IMG/VR virus record: IMGVR_UViG_3300032268_000986
Span: 186,001-250,000 of that record
DNA: 64,000 bases
Strand: one strand, 5' to 3'
Notes under the pieces: model-generated
Database searches by the model: none
Seen by the model: the letters and a program-made list of their open reading frames with translations, nothing else
What the model was told of the DNA's origin: nothing
Made by a program: the position numbers and the translations under genes
Shown here: one piece after another, positions 40,295 to 60,196 of the stretch
How positions within the stretch are numbered: position 1 is the stretch's first letter
How the letters are laid out: each line of letters starts with the position of its first letter

Positions 40295-41537
40295 ATTGGG
40301 GCAGGTATGTTAGTATGCTGTTGCCGCGGCTGGTTTCAATACGCTTCAAGTATGTCACCAACTCGGGCAATCTAAAACTTTCATCACCTTCACTTTTTAA
40401 ATAGTTTACATAACTTTGCAAGTCTTGTATTATGTGTTGTCGGGACACATTTGGATTTCGACTGTTCACAATGGTTGGGACAACCGTGCCATGCTGAGCA
40501 ATCCAGGACTCCATGCGATCAATAATGGGCTGGCGATAAATCATGGGCAACACTGACGGGCGCATGCACTCGGGATGATCCAAAAAATTGCAACTTTCAA
40601 TTGCTATCGATCGTTCCCAGGCATACTGGTACACACTAAGCAACGAGTCAATGGTCAATATTGTAGGAGTGGTACGGAACTGCATCAACCAATCATGCTG
40701 TTGTGCAATGGCCAACCACTTGTTCAGTGTTTCATGTATCTTGGGCACAGTGGCAGGCCAACGCACATAGTCATTTACAGTTTCAAATGTTTCAATACTC
40801 ATTCCAAGATTGACGCCGGCAAATTGCGTCAGCAGATCAACTGTTTGCTGATCCCATGTAATGAGATTTGTGGTAAATCCAATGGTGGCCGTGCGGTGTA
40901 TACCTGTTTGGATCAGTGCTTCCAGCATGGTTTTAAAAGCTGGTGTGATCAAGGTTTCGCCACCAATAAAATGTAGATATTGAATGTGAGGGCTTGCCCG
41001 AAGCATGGCAACAAATCGATCCACCAGCACTGGGTCATCGGTCCAATTTGCTCTTGGCAGTTGATCAATAAAACCTATGCGTTTCCACTCACTGGCCAAT
41101 CTTGAGCTGGCCACAGGAGTACAAAAAATACAGGCACTGTTGCAATAGTTCCCAAGATCTATCTGCCAATCTTGTGGAAACTGCACAAATTCTTGAGAGG
41201 TAAATGTATCAAACCAAGGACTTGATGCCATGGTTTTTTCAAACTGATCAACACGCACACCGGTCTTGAGTAATTGTCGTTGTCGGCCACTGATCTTGTT
41301 GTGACCTTCCATTTGATAGCACTTTTTGCATGCCTCTACTGGTTGGCCTTGTAGCATACGTGCCCGGATGTCTGACATGTGTTGCTGAAAAAACTCCACA
41401 GGATCGCTGTCACGTATATTGATCTTGGCAACTATATTCTTGTCTGCCCAACGGCAATAGGTCATGTCACCATTGTTTGTGATCCGCATGTGAAACCATG
41501 GGCTGGGACAAAAATATTGTTTTAAATCGTTAGGCAC
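40263..41537 (-). CDS. radical SAM protein with N-terminal SPASM/twitch-like domain
   Basis: CNSACIFC (CxxxCxxC), GGE motif, N-terminal CPSPW..C..C..C. Confidence 0.88.
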
Positions 41538-42123
41538 GTTGTGAAATTACTTTGTCAGCAAGACCGTAGGCCACAGCTTCATCGGCACTCATGAAAAAGT
41601 CTCGCTCCATGTCAATACTTAGTTGTTCGTAGGTTTTGCCCGCAGTATTGTGTTTGACATAGATCTCGGTCAAGTACTCTTTCATTTTCTGAATTTCACG
41701 AGCTTGAATCTGAATATCAGTTGCTTGACCACGAGCACCACCTGATGGTTGGTGAATCATGTGTCGTGCATTGGGCAGTATCATGCGCTTGCCCGCGGCG
41801 CCGGCTGTACCCAGCAAGCTACCCATGGAACAGGCCTGTCCCATGACAATGGTTTGAACATCGCATTTGATAAACTGCATGGTGTCATAGATGGCCATGC
41901 CTGCTGTGACTGACCCACCAGGTGAGTTGATGTATAACGAGATATCTTTGTCAGGATTCTCACTTTCCAAAAACAACATTTGTGCTATTAACAAACTGGC
42001 TGTGTGTTCTGAAACTTCTGTGTCCAGCATGATCACACGGTCTCTCAATAGTCGGCTGTAGATGTCATAACTGCGTTCGCCTTTGGCGGTGTGTTCAAGC
42101 ACAATTGGTACTAGATTTGGCAT
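41530..42123 (-). CDS. clpP: ATP-dependent Clp protease proteolytic subunit
   Basis: [31 protein letters not shown]. Confidence 0.96.
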
Positions 42124-43759: not shown

Positions 43760-44332
43760 TCATCGACGACTTATTTCGCTGATGGAGTCACACACATTTA
43801 GCGCCAGGGCTTCTTCGGCACTGAGCCACACATCATGTGGTGGCAACAGAGTTTTGCGTATTTCTTCTTGGCCAAGTCCAGTGCAGGCCTCGTAGTGTGC
43901 CAGCATGCGTTTGTGTGTGAGTTCAAACTCTTTCATGGTGGCAAACAGTTCATGTGCTTTGCCGTCTGACCCCCAGCTAAATTGATGACTCAAGATAGAT
44001 GTGTTGGGTGTCAGCACACGTCGGCCAGCGGTGCCTGCTAGAAAAATCAACAGGCCAGCTGATGCAATAGTGCCCAATCCCACGGTCTTGATTGGTATGT
44101 TGCTACTGTGCATGACGTCAATCAAGGCAAAGGCCGCGGACACATCTCCGCCTTCACTACAGATCATCAACAGCAATTCTTTGCGTTTTTTCTTGTTGAT
44201 GAAATTTTCATGCAAAACCCACTCGATTATGGGACGAATGCTTTCAGTGTCTACTGCGCCCATGAACACATACATGCCTGCATCCGCAAGCTGTTGACTG
44301 TGTGAATTTGTGGTTTCTGTTTCTGCTGTCAT
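43760..44332 (-). CDS. second, divergent ClpP-family protease
   Basis: ICSEGG, IASAG, ILSHQ, DVWLSAEEA. Confidence 0.85.
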   Translation of the reverse strand: MTAETETTNSHSQQLADAGMYVFMGAVDTESIRPIIEWVLHENFINKKKRKELLLMICSEGGDVSAAFALIDVMHSSNIPIKTVGLGTIASAGLLIFLAGTAGRRVLTPNTSILSHQFSWGSDGKAHELFATMKEFELTHKRMLAHYEACTGLGQEEIRKTLLPPHDVWLSAEEALALNVCDSISEISRR

Positions 44333-44352
44333 TGCATGCCCGTTTTTGGTAT

Positions 44353-45387
44353 TTAGCGACACTGGGATCTCCTGACTACATTAACTTCTGCTGAAGTGAC
44401 CTGTTCAATTTGATCAATTCCTATTTTTAATACTACATTTAATGTTTCTTTGCCTTGAATCTGGATGCGTCGGCTGCCAATCTCATTGAGATAACGGCTG
44501 CGATATTCACTCTGATCCAGCTCGGCTGCTGAGAAGCAGTACACCCGATCTCGACCCGTGGTGGTCTGCAGGGTCAAGCGATACATGGGTTCAGAATGCA
44601 CCATGTGACGGCGCATGATGTGCCAGGCCTGATCATCGTTGAACCAAGCACCGGGATTGTCGGCCACTAGATTTATATCCAGCACAATGCTGGCCGGCGC
44701 TGAGGCACAAGAATTTAGACCCGGATTGCATCGTGGGTACTGATTGATTGTATGCAGGGTATCTTGCATGGCTTGAATAAACTTCTTGTTCCAGGAAATG
44801 CGAAACGGAACCAAAAGATGTGCTTGTCGATTGCTGTCAAAATCCACCTTGACCGGTTGCAATCGCAGATCAAACGCTCGAGCAGGATAATCCTGCATCA
44901 CAGTGTTCAGCACCTGGTCGGCGCCCTGGCGTTGTTGCACAAGGGATCCGATTTGCACAGCCACACGATCACCGTTGATCTGTCCTGCTGTGGCACTGTT
45001 GTTGAGCAATCGGTTGGCAATGGCATTGTGAGCCACCCAGACTTCCATGACCACTCGCACGGATCTGCCCTGGTCCACACGCTCAACAATGTTGTAACGA
45101 TCAACCACACCTGAACTGTAGTTGATGATGTCTTCGCGCCCAATGCGATTGTTGCGCATCTCAGTTTCATTCAGCACCACAGTGCCCACAGCCTGCTCAA
45201 CTGCTAGCCTAAACGCCTGTTGCCGAGCCTGCTCAAAGTTGGGTGCTGTGGCTTCGACCTTGATGTAGTACACTGGCACTCGATCCAAGACCAAGTACTG
45301 TGCCGCAGTCAGCACCAGCCCTGCCACCTGAGCCTGAGCAGTGGCTGTTGCTGTGGCCAGCAACAGAGCCGCAAAATAGCGTTTCAT
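44353..45387 (-). CDS. secreted protein (FlgT-N/LPP20-like N-terminus)
   Basis: signal peptide; A...A...AVEQAVGT.V..ET. Confidence 0.55.
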   Translation of the reverse strand: MKRYFAALLLATATATAQAQVAGLVLTAAQYLVLDRVPVYYIKVEATAPNFEQARQQAFRLAVEQAVGTVVLNETEMRNNRIGREDIINYSSGVVDRYNIVERVDQGRSVRVVMEVWVAHNAIANRLLNNSATAGQINGDRVAVQIGSLVQQRQGADQVLNTVMQDYPARAFDLRLQPVKVDFDSNRQAHLLVPFRISWNKKFIQAMQDTLHTINQYPRCNPGLNSCASAPASIVLDINLVADNPGAWFNDDQAWHIMRRHMVHSEPMYRLTLQTTTGRDRVYCFSAAELDQSEYRSRYLNEIGSRRIQIQGKETLNVVLKIGIDQIEQVTSAEVNVVRRSQCR

Positions 45388-46004
45388 TATCGGCCGAACC
45401 GGCTGCGAAAGTAATCGGCTGCTTGCTCGCTGTCACGATCCCAGCGAATGGTCACGGACACTTCTTGTATGCCAGTGATATCTTCACGAGTCTTGCGGAA
45501 ACCACGCAAGATGGTCTGTGCATTGCTACGCACATTTTCAGTGAGTTCGACCACGGTGTCGTTGTTGTTCTCACGCAAGGAGACCTTGTTGGCTTCCTGG
45601 TCAGTCATGGCCACTGTTTGGCCATTGTCATTGCCCGAACGCACTCGGTCCTGTGCTTTTTCAAGATTCTTGGCAATCACATTCTTGACCTGTGTGGTAG
45701 TGATCTGTTCATTCAAGAATCGTGCCACCTGTGCCTTGGCCCTGAGTTCAGCGCGAGTCAGCGCAGACTTGCGGTTGGTAGCAGTACCACCAAAGCTGGA
45801 ATCAGTGCCCACTACTTCCAAGGCAACAATTTCACAGTTGGTCTTGGACCAACTGAACCATGCGCACTTGGTTTCAATCTTGATGTTCTCGCCAACAAAA
45901 CTAGTGGCTAGTTTTTGTTCGCTGATGGGTCCAGTTTGTTTGCCAGTAGAACTACAGCCGGCCAAGATGGCCACAGCAACTAGGGAAAGAGCAAGGTGTT
46001 TCAT
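45387..46004 (-). CDS. lipoprotein (LPP20-like)
   Basis: lipobox LAGC; A..RA...A..A.F; promoter 46034-46062. Confidence 0.7.
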   Translation of the reverse strand: MKHLALSLVAVAILAGCSSTGKQTGPISEQKLATSFVGENIKIETKCAWFSWSKTNCEIVALEVVGTDSSFGGTATNRKSALTRAELRAKAQVARFLNEQITTTQVKNVIAKNLEKAQDRVRSGNDNGQTVAMTDQEANKVSLRENNNDTVVELTENVRSNAQTILRGFRKTREDITGIQEVSVTIRWDRDSEQAADYFRSRFGR

Positions 46005-46058
46005 AACTGTCCTTTTGAGTTTAACATGTTAGTATTGTAAGTGAATTTGAATTATTGG

Positions 46059-46214
46059 TCAACCAGAATCTGCATCGCGATTCTGATGTTTGGGTTTGCG
46101 CCGGTACTCGGTCTTGCTCTTTTCCACACGACCGCGAAACGGCAAGTCTCGATCAAACAAGGCTCGATGAGCACGTTGCTTTACAGGCGGCAGTGTGAAT
46201 TGGATTGGCTTCAT
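46059..46214 (-). CDS. ArfA-like small basic protein (51 aa, absent from the ORF track)
   Basis: MKPIQFTLPPVKQRAHRALFDRDLPFRGRVEKSKTEYRRKPKHQNRDADSG; own promoter 46224-46252. Confidence 0.6.
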   Translation of the reverse strand: MKPIQFTLPPVKQRAHRALFDRDLPFRGRVEKSKTEYRRKPKHQNRDADSG

Positions 46215-46271
46215 AATGCAGTAATTATAGCAAATTGGGAATTATTGGTCAATCAGACCAGTGTTGTGTTT

Positions 46272-46499
46272 TTACAACCCCACATGTTTTTTGATCACAT
46301 AACGAGCAATTTTCTCGTCAAAGTACATGCGAACACCGTCACGCTCAGGCTCGTTGGCTACCATTTCGCCCAACTCTGTGGCCAAGGCATGTGTGAATCG
46401 AGTCAGAATGGCCTGGGTATCTTCCATCTGATCCAAGGGATCTCGATCTAGGATTTCTGCAAATTTGCCGATAAGTTCTTGTACGTTTGAGTGCATCAT
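46272..46499 (-). CDS. hypothetical early protein
   Basis: AAGGAG RBS; promoter 46530-46558. Confidence 0.7.
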   Translation of the reverse strand: MMHSNVQELIGKFAEILDRDPLDQMEDTQAILTRFTHALATELGEMVANEPERDGVRMYFDEKIARYVIKKHVGL

Positions 46500-46558
46500 G
46501 TTGGGCTCCTTTTTGTCAATCTATGCTATATTATAGCAAATTAGGAATATTTGGTCAA

Positions 46559-46586
46559 GAAAAACCCTGCTTTAAGCAGGGTTTTT
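46559..46586 (-). terminator. rho-independent terminator
   Basis: AAAACCCTGCT/AGCAGGGTTTT. Confidence 0.75.
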
Positions 46587-46605
46587 GCAAGGTAGTACTT
46601 GAGTA

Positions 46606-46881
46606 TTACTTTTTAGCTGTTTGTGCTGTGTAGGCTTTCATGATACCTTCGCCAAACTTGACATAGTCAAACTTGGTGGCTTCTTGCATGGCTTTCACAG
46701 TTTCACTGGCCACTGTGGCGGCAGCATCTGTGGTGGCCTTGACGGCTTTTTTGGTGTAGTCAGCTTGAGAGTCAATGAACTTGATCATGGCTTCTTTGGC
46801 TGCTTCGTTTGTGACAAAGGTGTTGACAAAAGTCTTTTTACCGGTTTGAACGGTGTCGATGAATGCGTCTGCTGTAAACAT
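46606..46881 (-). CDS. phasin-like amphipathic helical protein
   Basis: Ala/Lys/Thr-rich helical composition; strong RBS; TGC-N-GCA box in the promoter. Confidence 0.5.
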   Translation of the reverse strand: MFTADAFIDTVQTGKKTFVNTFVTNEAAKEAMIKFIDSQADYTKKAVKATTDAAATVASETVKAMQEATKFDYVKFGEGIMKAYTAQTAKK

Positions 46882-47031
46882 AGTGTTCTCCTTAATTAAG
46901 CAAGTTTACTATAGGACCCGGCCTATCCAGCGCCCTATGTATTATTGTAACATTATTTATGCTGCTCTGCAACATTTTTTAAAAAATAAATTAGTAGCCG
47001 ATCACTAAATACTTGTGCAAGGAGACAAACA

Positions 47032-47385
47032 ATGTTTGCAAAAATCAAAGAGTTATTTTTTGGAAAGCCAGCACCGATCAGTGCAGAAGCCCCGTACAAA
47101 GTCGAAGCGCCTGAGCCGTTACCCGAAGTCAAAACCGAAATCAAGAGTGATGGTGGTACATGGCCATTCCCTACCATGGCGCCAGTTGCGGAAAGCACAA
47201 CCTACAAAGTGCCCGAGCCAGCGGCTACCACACCAATCCCATTGGTACCAGAAAAGTCTGTGGCTTCCACTAAACCTGCCAAAAAAGCACCTGCCAAAAA
47301 AGCACCTGCCAAAAAAGCACCTGCCAAAAAGTCCAGTGCAGCCAAAGCAGCCGCCAAGCCCCGCGCTAAAAAATCTCCCAAATAA
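47032..47385 (+). CDS. histone H1-like Lys/Ala/Pro-rich protein
   Basis: KKAPA repeats; AAGGAG RBS; TAAATA upstream. Confidence 0.7.
   Translation: MFAKIKELFFGKPAPISAEAPYKVEAPEPLPEVKTEIKSDGGTWPFPTMAPVAESTTYKVPEPAATTPIPLVPEKSVASTKPAKKAPAKKAPAKKAPAKKSSAAKAAAKPRAKKSPK
47274..47330 (+). repeat. 15-bp tandem repeat x3
   Basis: AAAAAAGCACCTGCC at 47281, 47296 and 47311. Confidence 0.9.
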
Positions 47386-47408
47386 AAAGGAGCCCGGGGC
47401 TCCTTTTT
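47385..47408. terminator. bidirectional terminator
   Basis: AAAAGGAGCCC/GGGCTCCTTTT between convergent genes. Confidence 0.8.
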
Positions 47409-47695
47409 TACATCATCATTCTAACCAGGCCAACTGTGTCTATTGTGGTCAGCAATAGATAGTTAGCCAGCATGCCAAAAGATTTCCTAGTCCAACTAGC
47501 CCAAGCATACATGGCACAGCCAAGAATCCAAACAGGATAAAGAGCAAGAAGCGGAGGCGTGGGGACTGTGAGTGCCATAGTAACACTGCAACCAATGCTA
47601 GCAGCCCAAGCAAGCAACTCAATAACAAAGCGAACTCGGTTAGATCTAAAATCATCTCGTATCCAATCAAAGGTGGGTTTTAAAAGTGTGTTCAT
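47408..47695 (-). CDS. small multi-TM membrane protein
   Basis: three hydrophobic helices. Confidence 0.7.
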   Translation of the reverse strand: MNTLLKPTFDWIRDDFRSNRVRFVIELLAWAASIGCSVTMALTVPTPPLLALYPVWILGCAMYAWASWTRKSFGMLANYLLLTTIDTVGLVRMMM

Positions 47696-58776: not shown

Positions 58777-59001
58777 TTAGAACAATTTTTTAGGAAGCTC
58801 TTGCTCGCGTAGTTTTCGCTGCCAGCGTTTTTTTGCAGCAGCGGCCTTGAGTTTGCGTTCAGTAGTGGGCTTGACGTAGCATTCACGGCTGCGCAAATCA
58901 TCCAGCAGTCCCGATGTTTGAATTTTTTTCTTGAACTTGCGCAGGGCCTTGTCTACGTTGCCATCTTGCACCAGTACTGATCTACCGTGTAATTTAGTCA
59001 T
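58777..59001 (-). CDS. rpsU: ribosomal protein bS21
   Basis: VDKALRKFKKK....G.L..LRSRECYVKPTTERK. Confidence 0.9.
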   Translation of the reverse strand: MTKLHGRSVLVQDGNVDKALRKFKKKIQTSGLLDDLRSRECYVKPTTERKLKAAAAKKRWQRKLREQELPKKLF

Positions 59002-60196
59002 TTGTTGTGTTGAGTGCGCAGGGATTGTTGATCAAGTCAGTACCAATATTGACTTGTTCAATCCCTTGCTCACGATATTTAACCAAATTGAACATATGAG
59101 GCAACAGCACTCGCTCAAGTTCGCTGTGCAGACCACGAGCTCCTGTACGGCTGGTCATGGTTCGTTTTGCAATGACCTCTAGTGCAGGGACATCAAAATT
59201 TAATTCAACTTTGTCTTGGGCAAACAACCAACGATATTGTGAAACATAGTTGTGTTTTACATCAGTGAGAATCTTTATAAGATCGTCCTGTGTGAGTTCT
59301 TGCAGGGCCACCCAACTGGGAAAACGTCCCACAAACTCAGGAATCATGCCAAACTTGATCAAATCTTCAGGTGTGGTCTGTGTCAAAGTTGCTTGTTCTG
59401 TGTGCTTGGTTAGATCAGCCGCAAACCCAATTGAAGTGCCCTTGACTCGATTCTTGACCACAGTGTCCAAGCCTACAAATGCGCCGCCGGCAATGAACAA
59501 GATGTTTGTGGTGTCAATTTCAACCATGTCGCCCGATGGGTGTTTGCGATTACCAGTGGGAGTTACTCTGCACTTGGTGCCTTCCACCAGCTTGAGCAGG
59601 GCCTGTTGCACACCTTCCCCTGACACATCTCGAGTGATACTGGCACTCTCGCTGCGCCGACTGATCTTGTCAATTTCGTCAATGAACACAATACCGCGTT
59701 GTGTTTTTTCTACGTCGCCGCCGGCAGCGGCAAACAGTCGACTGATCAAACTTTCAACGTCGTCGCCCACGTACCCTGCTTCTGTGAGGCTGGTGGCATC
59801 GGCGATCACAAACGGAACGTCAAGGTAACGAGCCACACTGCGAGCCAGCAGTGTTTTGCCTGACCCAGTGGGGCCCAGCATGAGAATATTGCATTTTTCA
59901 ATCTCAGTGTCAGATTTCAAATTGTTAATGCGTTTGTAGTGGTTGACAATGGCCACTGCCAATACCTGCTTGGCCTGGTCTTGACCGATAACATATTGGT
60001 CAAGATGTGCTTTAATACGAATTGGATCCAGCGTGGGTTCAGAACTGGTCGCTGGCAATACATCATCAGTCAGCAATGAACCGCAGAGGTCTACACACTC
60101 GTTGCAAATTGCAACAGTGTCGCCAACAATGAGTTTGGTCACTGCATCTTTGTGTTTGCCACAAAAACTACAGGTATCAGGTATGTCTTTTTTCAT
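58994..60196 (-). CDS. clpX: ClpX ATPase
   Basis: CSFC...ICNEC zinc domain, GPTGSGKT, DATSLTEAGYVG, RDVSGEGVQQ, IGF loop, GARGL. Confidence 0.96.
   Translation of the reverse strand: MKKDIPDTCSFCGKHKDAVTKLIVGDTVAICNECVDLCGSLLTDDVLPATSSEPTLDPIRIKAHLDQYVIGQDQAKQVLAVAIVNHYKRINNLKSDTEIEKCNILMLGPTGSGKTLLARSVARYLDVPFVIADATSLTEAGYVGDDVESLISRLFAAAGGDVEKTQRGIVFIDEIDKISRRSESASITRDVSGEGVQQALLKLVEGTKCRVTPTGNRKHPSGDMVEIDTTNILFIAGGAFVGLDTVVKNRVKGTSIGFAADLTKHTEQATLTQTTPEDLIKFGMIPEFVGRFPSWVALQELTQDDLIKILTDVKHNYVSQYRWLFAQDKVELNFDVPALEVIAKRTMTSRTGARGLHSELERVLLPHMFNLVKYREQGIEQVNIGTDLINNPCALNTTND

Follow-up and report, generated by a model that had tools for sequence, protein, structure and literature searches.

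A divergent, apparently virus-only relative of the ribosome rescue factor ArfA in a tmRNA-bearing jumbo phage

The ArfA-like gene and its surroundings

The window analysed here is a stretch of 64,000 nt, bases 186001-250000 of IMG/VR record IMGVR_UViG_3300032268_000986. The parent virus record is 342,865 bp long, is rated 99% complete and has a G+C content of 47%. It carries 33 tRNA genes and one tmRNA gene (aragorn), and its identity as a phage is confirmed by matches of tail-fibre and other virion proteins. One structural protein matches T4-like cyanophage proteins only, at about 30% identity, and is uninformative about the host, while the sequence words of the window occur mostly in freshwater and lake metagenomes. 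The gene of interest encodes a protein of 51 residues with a net charge of about +8, which contains ALFDRDLPFRGRVEKSKTEYRRKPKH, and is flanked on the same strand by two other small genes (Table 1). An earlier note on this DNA had described the ORF as a phage gene with a TTGACC-17-TATAAT promoter of its own. Translation and a consensus scan confirm both ORF and promoter, the span that the note gave, 46059-46252, comprises exactly these two elements, and the phage origin holds, the gene being part of a 342,865-bp virus record. The description of the ORF as uncalled is true of the first-stage length cut-off only, while public gene callers do call its homologues.

Table 1. Features at and around the ArfA-like gene. 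Positions are those of the window unless marked otherwise.
Feature	Position	Strand	Description	Basis
ArfA-like gene	46059..46214	-	51 codons; ATG start, TGA stop at 46059-46061	ORF and translation
Product, N-terminal part	residues 11-31		putative equivalent of the ArfA N-terminal RF2-contacting and A-site region	alignment
Product, C-terminal part	residues 32-46 (...KSKTEYRRKPKHQNR)		putative equivalent of the ArfA basic tail, mRNA tunnel	alignment
Sigma-70-type promoter	46224..46252	-	-35 TTGACC 46247-46252, 17-nt spacer, TG-extended -10 TATAAT 46224-46229
Gap from -10 to ATG	46215..46223	-	9 nt, without Shine-Dalgarno sequence	read from sequence
Next promoter	46034..46062	-	TTGACC-17-TACAAT, for the lipoprotein gene; -35 overlaps the ArfA-like stop codon
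Downstream neighbour	45387..46004	-	205-aa predicted lipoprotein; signal peptide ends LAGC
Upstream neighbour	46272..46499	-	75 aa, function unassigned; own promoter 46530-46558, normal Shine-Dalgarno leader
Small gene	46606-46881	-	91 aa, function unassigned; weak HU-like and phasin-like matches
Small ORF	47032-47385	+	117 aa, KKAPAKK repeats; weak histone H1-like HC2 match; strand opposite to neighbours
ClpP genes	41530-42123 and 43760-44362		both on the minus strand; one canonical (270 bits), one divergent (95 bits)
ClpX	58994-60196		minus strand; full: zinc finger, AAA_2 and D2-small domains
Permuted tmRNA	record 105048-105526 (L072:1596-2039), outside the window		tag ANDSQFALAA	aragorn; Rfam tmRNA_permuted, 135.9 bits

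The promoter of the ArfA-like gene matches 11 of 12 consensus positions and has a TG ahead of its -10 element (consensus scan). Transcription would start at a conserved purine at about 46217, which would leave a leader of about 3 nt and an mRNA of the leaderless type. At 14 or more distinct related loci the homologue follows a promoter of the same layout, and most promoter-bearing homologue loci keep the 9-nt spacing and a purine at position 7. Over the whole genome, 17 of the 56 strong promoters (pattern TTGAC-N16-18-TANAAT) have an ORF start 5-9 nt past the -10 element, against about 7% for random positions (p = 2e-7). Leaderless-type genes are common in this phage and not peculiar to the ArfA-like gene; its other strong promoters are followed by leaders of 19-46 nt that include a Shine-Dalgarno sequence. 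Near-identical promoter blocks, TTGACCAATAATTC...TTTGCTATAAT, are found three times on the minus strand within 520 bp (46046-46062, 46236-46252 and 46540-46556), and since there is one small gene for each block, the region is organized as a string of independently transcribed small genes.

Metatranscriptome contigs from one lake library, about 97% identical to the window, span 46032-46182 and 46220-46370; past the end of the ArfA-like gene, the next 1.7 kb downstream has no coverage in the same library. The contigs differ from the window at four positions inside the ORF, of which two are synonymous and two fall at variable residues. Transcription of the ArfA-like gene is suggested by these contigs, but not more than suggested because RNA libraries can contain DNA. 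The best-covered stretch of the region is the 91-aa gene at 46606-46881, which has matches in three metatranscriptome libraries from lakes, two of them with about 99% identity. A blastn comparison of the 1.7-kb neighbourhood with 50,697 phage records gave zero matches, and no credible Rfam match was found at 45000-47500.

The permuted tmRNA, which is of the two-piece type, adjoins the cluster of 33 tRNA genes at 91-109 kb, and ClpX and both ClpP genes lie within 20 kb of the ArfA-like gene. With a tmRNA tag ending in ALAA, and with ClpX and ClpP, this looks like a phage-borne tagging and degradation pathway. SmpB and a class-I release factor were searched for in the phage genome and neither was found, so the phage would depend on its host for both SmpB and RF2. 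Of five related or comparable jumbo phages, four have a permuted tmRNA, among them Ralstonia phage RsoM2USA; since RsoM2USA carries the permuted type too, the type of tmRNA is uninformative about the host.

Conservation, selection and distribution

A search of 5.8 billion proteins returned 55 close homologue clusters with lengths of 49-57 aa, identities of 57-94% and E-values down to 1e-22. An exhaustive HMMER search of 1.84 billion representatives (E<=0.001) added 72 more distant cluster representatives, the clusters being defined at 50% identity. A homologue is present at 24 IMG/VR loci, and the frame is open in all 19 of the homologous loci checked. Across 18 loci the median pS is 0.68, with synonymous sites near saturation, while the median pN is 0.18, and the median dN/dS is about 0.13 where dS can be estimated. 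The codon-aligned antisense frame, a 136-aa ORF in the window that is without a Pfam match, contains stops in 9 of 19 loci; because of its length it could win over the sense ORF in gene calling. Conservation was a point at which the ArfA idea of the earlier note could have failed, and the clusters, the loci and the dN/dS of about 0.13 uphold it.

It is highly improbable that the ORF is non-functional as a protein, being either a chance frame or a short upstream ORF whose translation controls the lipoprotein gene. The ORF is indeed very short, and in several related phages the start of the lipoprotein gene overlaps the ArfA-like stop codon (ATGA), an arrangement that would permit translational coupling. 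However, the protein sequence is strongly kept while synonymous sites are saturated, the family is found in many neighbourhoods without a lipoprotein gene, and the lipoprotein gene of the window comes with a separate promoter and Shine-Dalgarno sequence. This explanation is already largely refuted by the selection pattern, and the ORF is almost certainly a real gene.

The related jumbo phages share the neighbourhood, with genes for UDP-glucose dehydrogenase and UvdE, small genes, ClpP and radical SAM genes, and on a more distant contig of 248 kb the homologue is again found near ClpP. In all 28 homologue loci examined, a stop codon, mostly TGA, follows after 44-56 codons, and the hydrophobic tail is absent. 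One variant protein, P0003, on a 1.5-kb contig from a near-identical phage, has its TGA stop changed to a Trp codon and gains 10 residues, for a length of 61 aa. Since this extension runs into the next promoter, the C-terminus appears to tolerate extension in nature. Near distant members of the family, on two unrelated contigs, there are genes with an HD_4 domain, that of RelA/SpoT-type hydrolases (L093:918-1445 and L006:627-1088).

Contigs of 230-356 kb, a size typical of this jumbo-phage group, carry many of the homologues, and the three distant members that were checked come from short contigs crowded with small genes that lack annotation. Close-family peptide patterns, run against 185,579 prokaryote species with one genome per species, found no relative. 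A degenerate DNA pattern for H-x-A-[L/F]-F-D-x-x-[L/F]-P-F gave 36 matches in the same 185,579 species genomes, which are attributed to chance because none has the C-terminal motif. An HMM search of 401 sampled genomes from the GTDB class that includes an ArfA-bearing Neisseria yielded partial matches only, at 19-24 bits, and no member. From these pattern searches a virus-only distribution appears well supported.

Relationship to ArfA and proposed role

A phmmer search of all PDB sequences (E<=10) with the phage protein gave six matches, all of them ArfA chains, at an E-value of 0.014 over residues 4-47, and a profile of 30 homologues retrieved ArfA alone from the PDB (E 8e-4). Alignment of the phage family with three ArfA alignments by hhalign gave probabilities of 92.8%, 90.3% and 88.7% (E 4e-7 to 3e-6, with 4e-7 for the 92.8% alignment) over ArfA residues 12-53, although profile scores of this kind are inflated by short, basic, low-complexity sequences. 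The third ArfA alignment was the more diverse one, with Neisseria-type and Pseudomonas-type sequences from genomes. The resemblance to ArfA that the earlier note proposed is thus borne out by the PDB matches and by the profile comparison (89-93%) that it had suggested as a check. Its quoted E. coli ArfA string agrees with the annotated K-12 gene, and the features it had listed, namely the shared F-R-x-R-V-E-K-x-K...Y-x-R-K-x-K-H pattern, the missing KGKG segment (a three-residue gap in KGKGS) and the absent hydrophobic tail, are all seen in the HMMER and hhalign alignments. A link to T4 gp30.9, also raised there, found no support: tblastn against 50,697 phage records gave no T4-like match at E<=10.

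The Pfam ArfA model (PF03889, gathering threshold 25.5 bits) is absent from an hmmscan of the 51-aa protein even at E<=10, and a PF03889 search of the whole phage genome at the same limit found nothing. At E<0.01 the model matches 2 of 73 family representatives. The PHROGs that match, 6310 and 2701, are both of unassigned function. A bridge to the model is the 51-aa protein of Pseudoalteromonas phage J2-1 (ATN93434.1), which is annotated as ArfA, has the same three-residue deletion and passes PF03889 at 41 bits; used as a protein query, it returned only itself. Many close homologues are named "stalled ribosome alternative rescue factor ArfA" by JGI, a naming which, like the near-leaderless mRNA and the phage tmRNA, ClpX and ClpP, goes beyond the earlier note. 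From its sequence relationships the protein is very probably a homologue of ArfA, if not a canonical member, and the ArfA reading is the best supported one.

In the cryo-EM work on ArfA with RF2 on the 70S ribosome (PMC5378476), Trp319 in the switch loop of RF2 is bound by a patch made up of ArfA Leu19, Leu24 and Phe25, and a change at Ala18 (A18T) inactivates ArfA. In the same work His21-Glu30 lie in the A site, residues 31-48 occupy the mRNA tunnel, where their contacts are electrostatic, and the N-terminal fold orders only in the activated ribosome-RF2 complex. In the alignments, the phage equivalents of these sites are A18, L19, L24/P25 and F26, followed by R27-G-R-V-E31 and by K32-R46. 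Residues R14, H16, R17, L19, F20, L24, P25, V30, E31, R39, K42 and H43 are invariant in the close family, and A18, F26, R27, R29 and Y37 are at least 90% conserved, so that all equivalents of the RF2-contact patch are invariant or at least 90% conserved, as far as conservation goes. The basic tail is kept, with phage Y37, R39, K40, K42 and H43 corresponding to ArfA Y39, R41, K42, K44 and H45. The strongest constraint falls on the parts that in ArfA activate RF2 and sense the empty tunnel.

Two features set the phage family apart. The KGKGS loop has a three-residue gap in all alignments (ArfA KNKKGKGSY, phage KSK---TEY), and since these residues are lost from the most conserved motif of ArfA, the tunnel segment would be shorter. 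By itself the deletion is no argument against function because ArfA activity does not depend on any one residue of KGKGS or the tail (PMC6299226). The family also has three invariant basic residues, R14, H16 and R17, at positions occupied in ArfA by D, A/I and E, and the contacts of the phage protein may accordingly differ from those of ArfA. A two-chain prediction with E. coli RF2 gave a score of 0.23 against a mark of 0.34, and counts neither way because it is only on the ribosome that ArfA and RF2 come together.

ArfA serves bacteria as a back-up and is kept off by tmRNA: the cellular arfA gene is silenced by tmRNA, and active protein arises only where its mRNA has been cut by RNase III and is left without a stop codon. 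In E. coli, a long 3' hairpin and the hydrophobic tail couple arfA expression to the loss of tmRNA activity (PMC10107115). This long hairpin is seen in the E. coli gene and is absent from the phage gene. A 9-bp stem at the 3' end of the phage ORF (local z = -2.6) is found only in the window and its closest relative, and was dropped as a candidate for an arfA-like regulatory hairpin since it is unconserved beyond that relative. Because the gene has a true stop and its own promoter, the phage probably makes the ArfA-like factor without the usual tmRNA control of the host. The layout, with its own promoter, a true stop and neither a hydrophobic tail nor a conserved arfA-type hairpin, fits the constitutive expression that the earlier note had supposed.

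The most likely role, with a probability of roughly 0.6, is that of a constitutive factor that would rescue ribosomes through a host release factor, RF2. If the factor worked as E. coli ArfA does, its basic C-terminal part (about residues 32-46) would reach into the mRNA tunnel left empty when a ribosome stalls on the 3' end of an mRNA that is cut or lacks a stop codon, while N-terminal residues V11, A18, L19, L24/P25 and F26 would form a small hydrophobic domain that holds host RF2 open; RF2 would then hydrolyse the peptidyl-tRNA and the ribosome would be freed. With a gene already of mature-ArfA length, a true stop and a strong sigma-70-type promoter, the factor would be made whenever the promoter fires, and its output would be independent of tmRNA status. 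What the analysis establishes is a real gene, its homology to ArfA, its layout and its co-occurrence with tmRNA, ClpX and ClpP, while we infer ribosome binding, RF2 dependence and rescue activity, together with the timing of expression and a benefit to the phage. Since the phage has a permuted tmRNA, ClpX and two ClpP genes, the ArfA-like protein looks like the arm that works without tagging in a rescue and quality-control kit borne by the phage.

Two other roles can be weighed against rescue. It is quite unlikely that the protein is an ArfA-derived blocker or decoy, which would sit in the vacant A site and mRNA tunnel, or attach to RF2, with no hydrolysis following; it could in that way keep host tmRNA-SmpB or host ArfA away from stalled ribosomes, favour the phage tmRNA or titrate RF2. 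The truncated KGKGS loop and the new invariant basic residues R14, H16 and R17 in the N-terminal half would agree with such a role, as would the phage's possession of its own tmRNA, and the A18T mutant of ArfA shows that binding without activation is possible (PMC5378476). However, the equivalents of the RF2-activating A18, L19 and F25 are the best conserved in the family and a pure blocker would not need them, and ribosomes locked on dead mRNAs would cost the phage translation capacity. A small basic nucleic-acid-binding or ribosome-associated protein that resembles DUF7230 (PF23876) and does not rescue, its likeness to ArfA being convergent or distantly inherited, is likewise unlikely. The lack of a Pfam ArfA match speaks for it, as does the fact that the single Pfam match is to DUF7230, at 17.8 bits against a cut-off of 27, over residues 27-48 and the K-x-Y-x-R-x-x-K-H tail. 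DUF7230 is matched by 24 of 73 family representatives, against the 2 of 73 for ArfA, the nearest ESM Atlas clusters are labelled DUF7230, and the two PHROGs are without an assigned function. On the other side, hhalign of the phage family against six cellular DUF7230 members, a small alignment, gave a probability of only 7% (E 0.005), compared with 89-93% for ArfA, and the ArfA match extends over both the basic tail and the hydrophobic N-terminal half, whose order and spacing agree. Since the J2-1 protein, a bona fide Pfam ArfA member, also passes DUF7230, a DUF7230 match is no argument against kinship with ArfA. Cellular DUF7230 (RNPVAKHA...F-x-D-R-x-K-Y) lacks the ALFD-LPF patch of the phage family, and because it aligns poorly with that family, ArfA appears to be the closer relative; between cellular DUF7230 and ArfA the hhalign probability is 0.8%.

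Cellular DUF7230 was observed in 6 of 301 sampled genomes (L081-L086, of the GTDB class of G005), and in none of the four with ArfA. Several of these proteins end in a hydrophobic tail, as does full-length ArfA, and cellular DUF7230 could be another unrecognised small ribosome-associated family.

If the RF2-dependent rescue role is correct, the virus-only ArfA branch might serve as a tmRNA-proof constitutive rescue system that acts with the permuted tmRNA and ClpXP to counter the translational effects of RNA-cutting immunity. Ribosomes would be kept free during mass cutting of mRNA, whether the cutting comes from ribonucleases of host defence or toxin systems or from the phage as it shuts off host mRNA. 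This idea is speculation, and doubtful as it stands.

Taken by its sequence, the protein appears to be a divergent ArfA relative, so far virus-only and with constitutive-looking expression, while phage ArfA genes as such have already been annotated. What it would add is a phage ArfA stripped of tmRNA control, alongside the phage's own tmRNA and ClpXP protease. For huge phages, tRNAs and tmRNA have been described so far, and the survey of such phages lists tmRNA, SmpB, release factors and RRF among the translation genes, not ArfA (PMC7162821). If the protein is active, large phages manage their supply of free ribosomes by both rescue routes, and it would be a natural minimal ArfA without the KGKGS loop that helps to define what the tunnel-sensing tail needs. 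Genes this small get missed or mis-called in isolate genomes. ArfA-like ORFs of the KGKGS type were seen in Pseudomonas phage pf16 (L034:1495-1638), RsoM2USA (L033:2968-3156) and Salmonella phage Arash (L035:1417-1641); the pf16 and RsoM2USA annotations instead place a hypothetical CDS on the opposite strand, and the Arash copy goes under the name "ribosomal protein L2".

Comparison with known rescue factors

ArfT of Francisella and BrfA of Bacillus are, like the proposed phage factor, small basic peptides that sense the empty tunnel and recruit a release factor (PMC6299226; PMC6881298), and ArfT can use either RF1 or RF2. The PDB search with the phage protein (E<=10) returned ArfA chains only, so there was no ArfT or BrfA match.

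E. coli ArfA (YhdL; PF03889; PDB 5U4I, 5MDV and 5H5U) is similar in mature size, with 52-55 aa compared with 51 aa in the phage, and has the hydrophobic N-terminal mini-domain, the F-R-x-R-V-E-K A-site segment and the basic Y-x-R-K-x-K-H tail in the same order. Unlike E. coli ArfA, the phage protein fails the Pfam model, has three KGKGS residues deleted and carries the extra R14, H16 and R17. The two genes also differ, since that of the phage has a true stop and neither a hydrophobic C-tail nor an RNase III hairpin, and would be free of tmRNA-coupled regulation. Its mRNA appears to be of the leaderless type, and its family has been found only in viruses.

Among phages, ArfA has been annotated as g10 of Citromicrobium phage RXM (PMC8953757) and as gp30 of pelagiphage HTVC027P, which is reported to be highly expressed early and late in infection (PMC12753301); in the literature that was searched there was no functional test of any phage ArfA. 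The J2-1 protein, RXM g10 and HTVC027P gp30 are, like the product of the window, small ArfA relatives whose length is close to that of mature ArfA. In contrast to the window's protein, however, all three pass the Pfam ArfA model. The family of the window has an N-terminal signature of its own, R-x-H-R-A-L-F-D-x-D-L-P-F, and with at least 55 clusters it forms a set separate from the annotated phage ArfA proteins.
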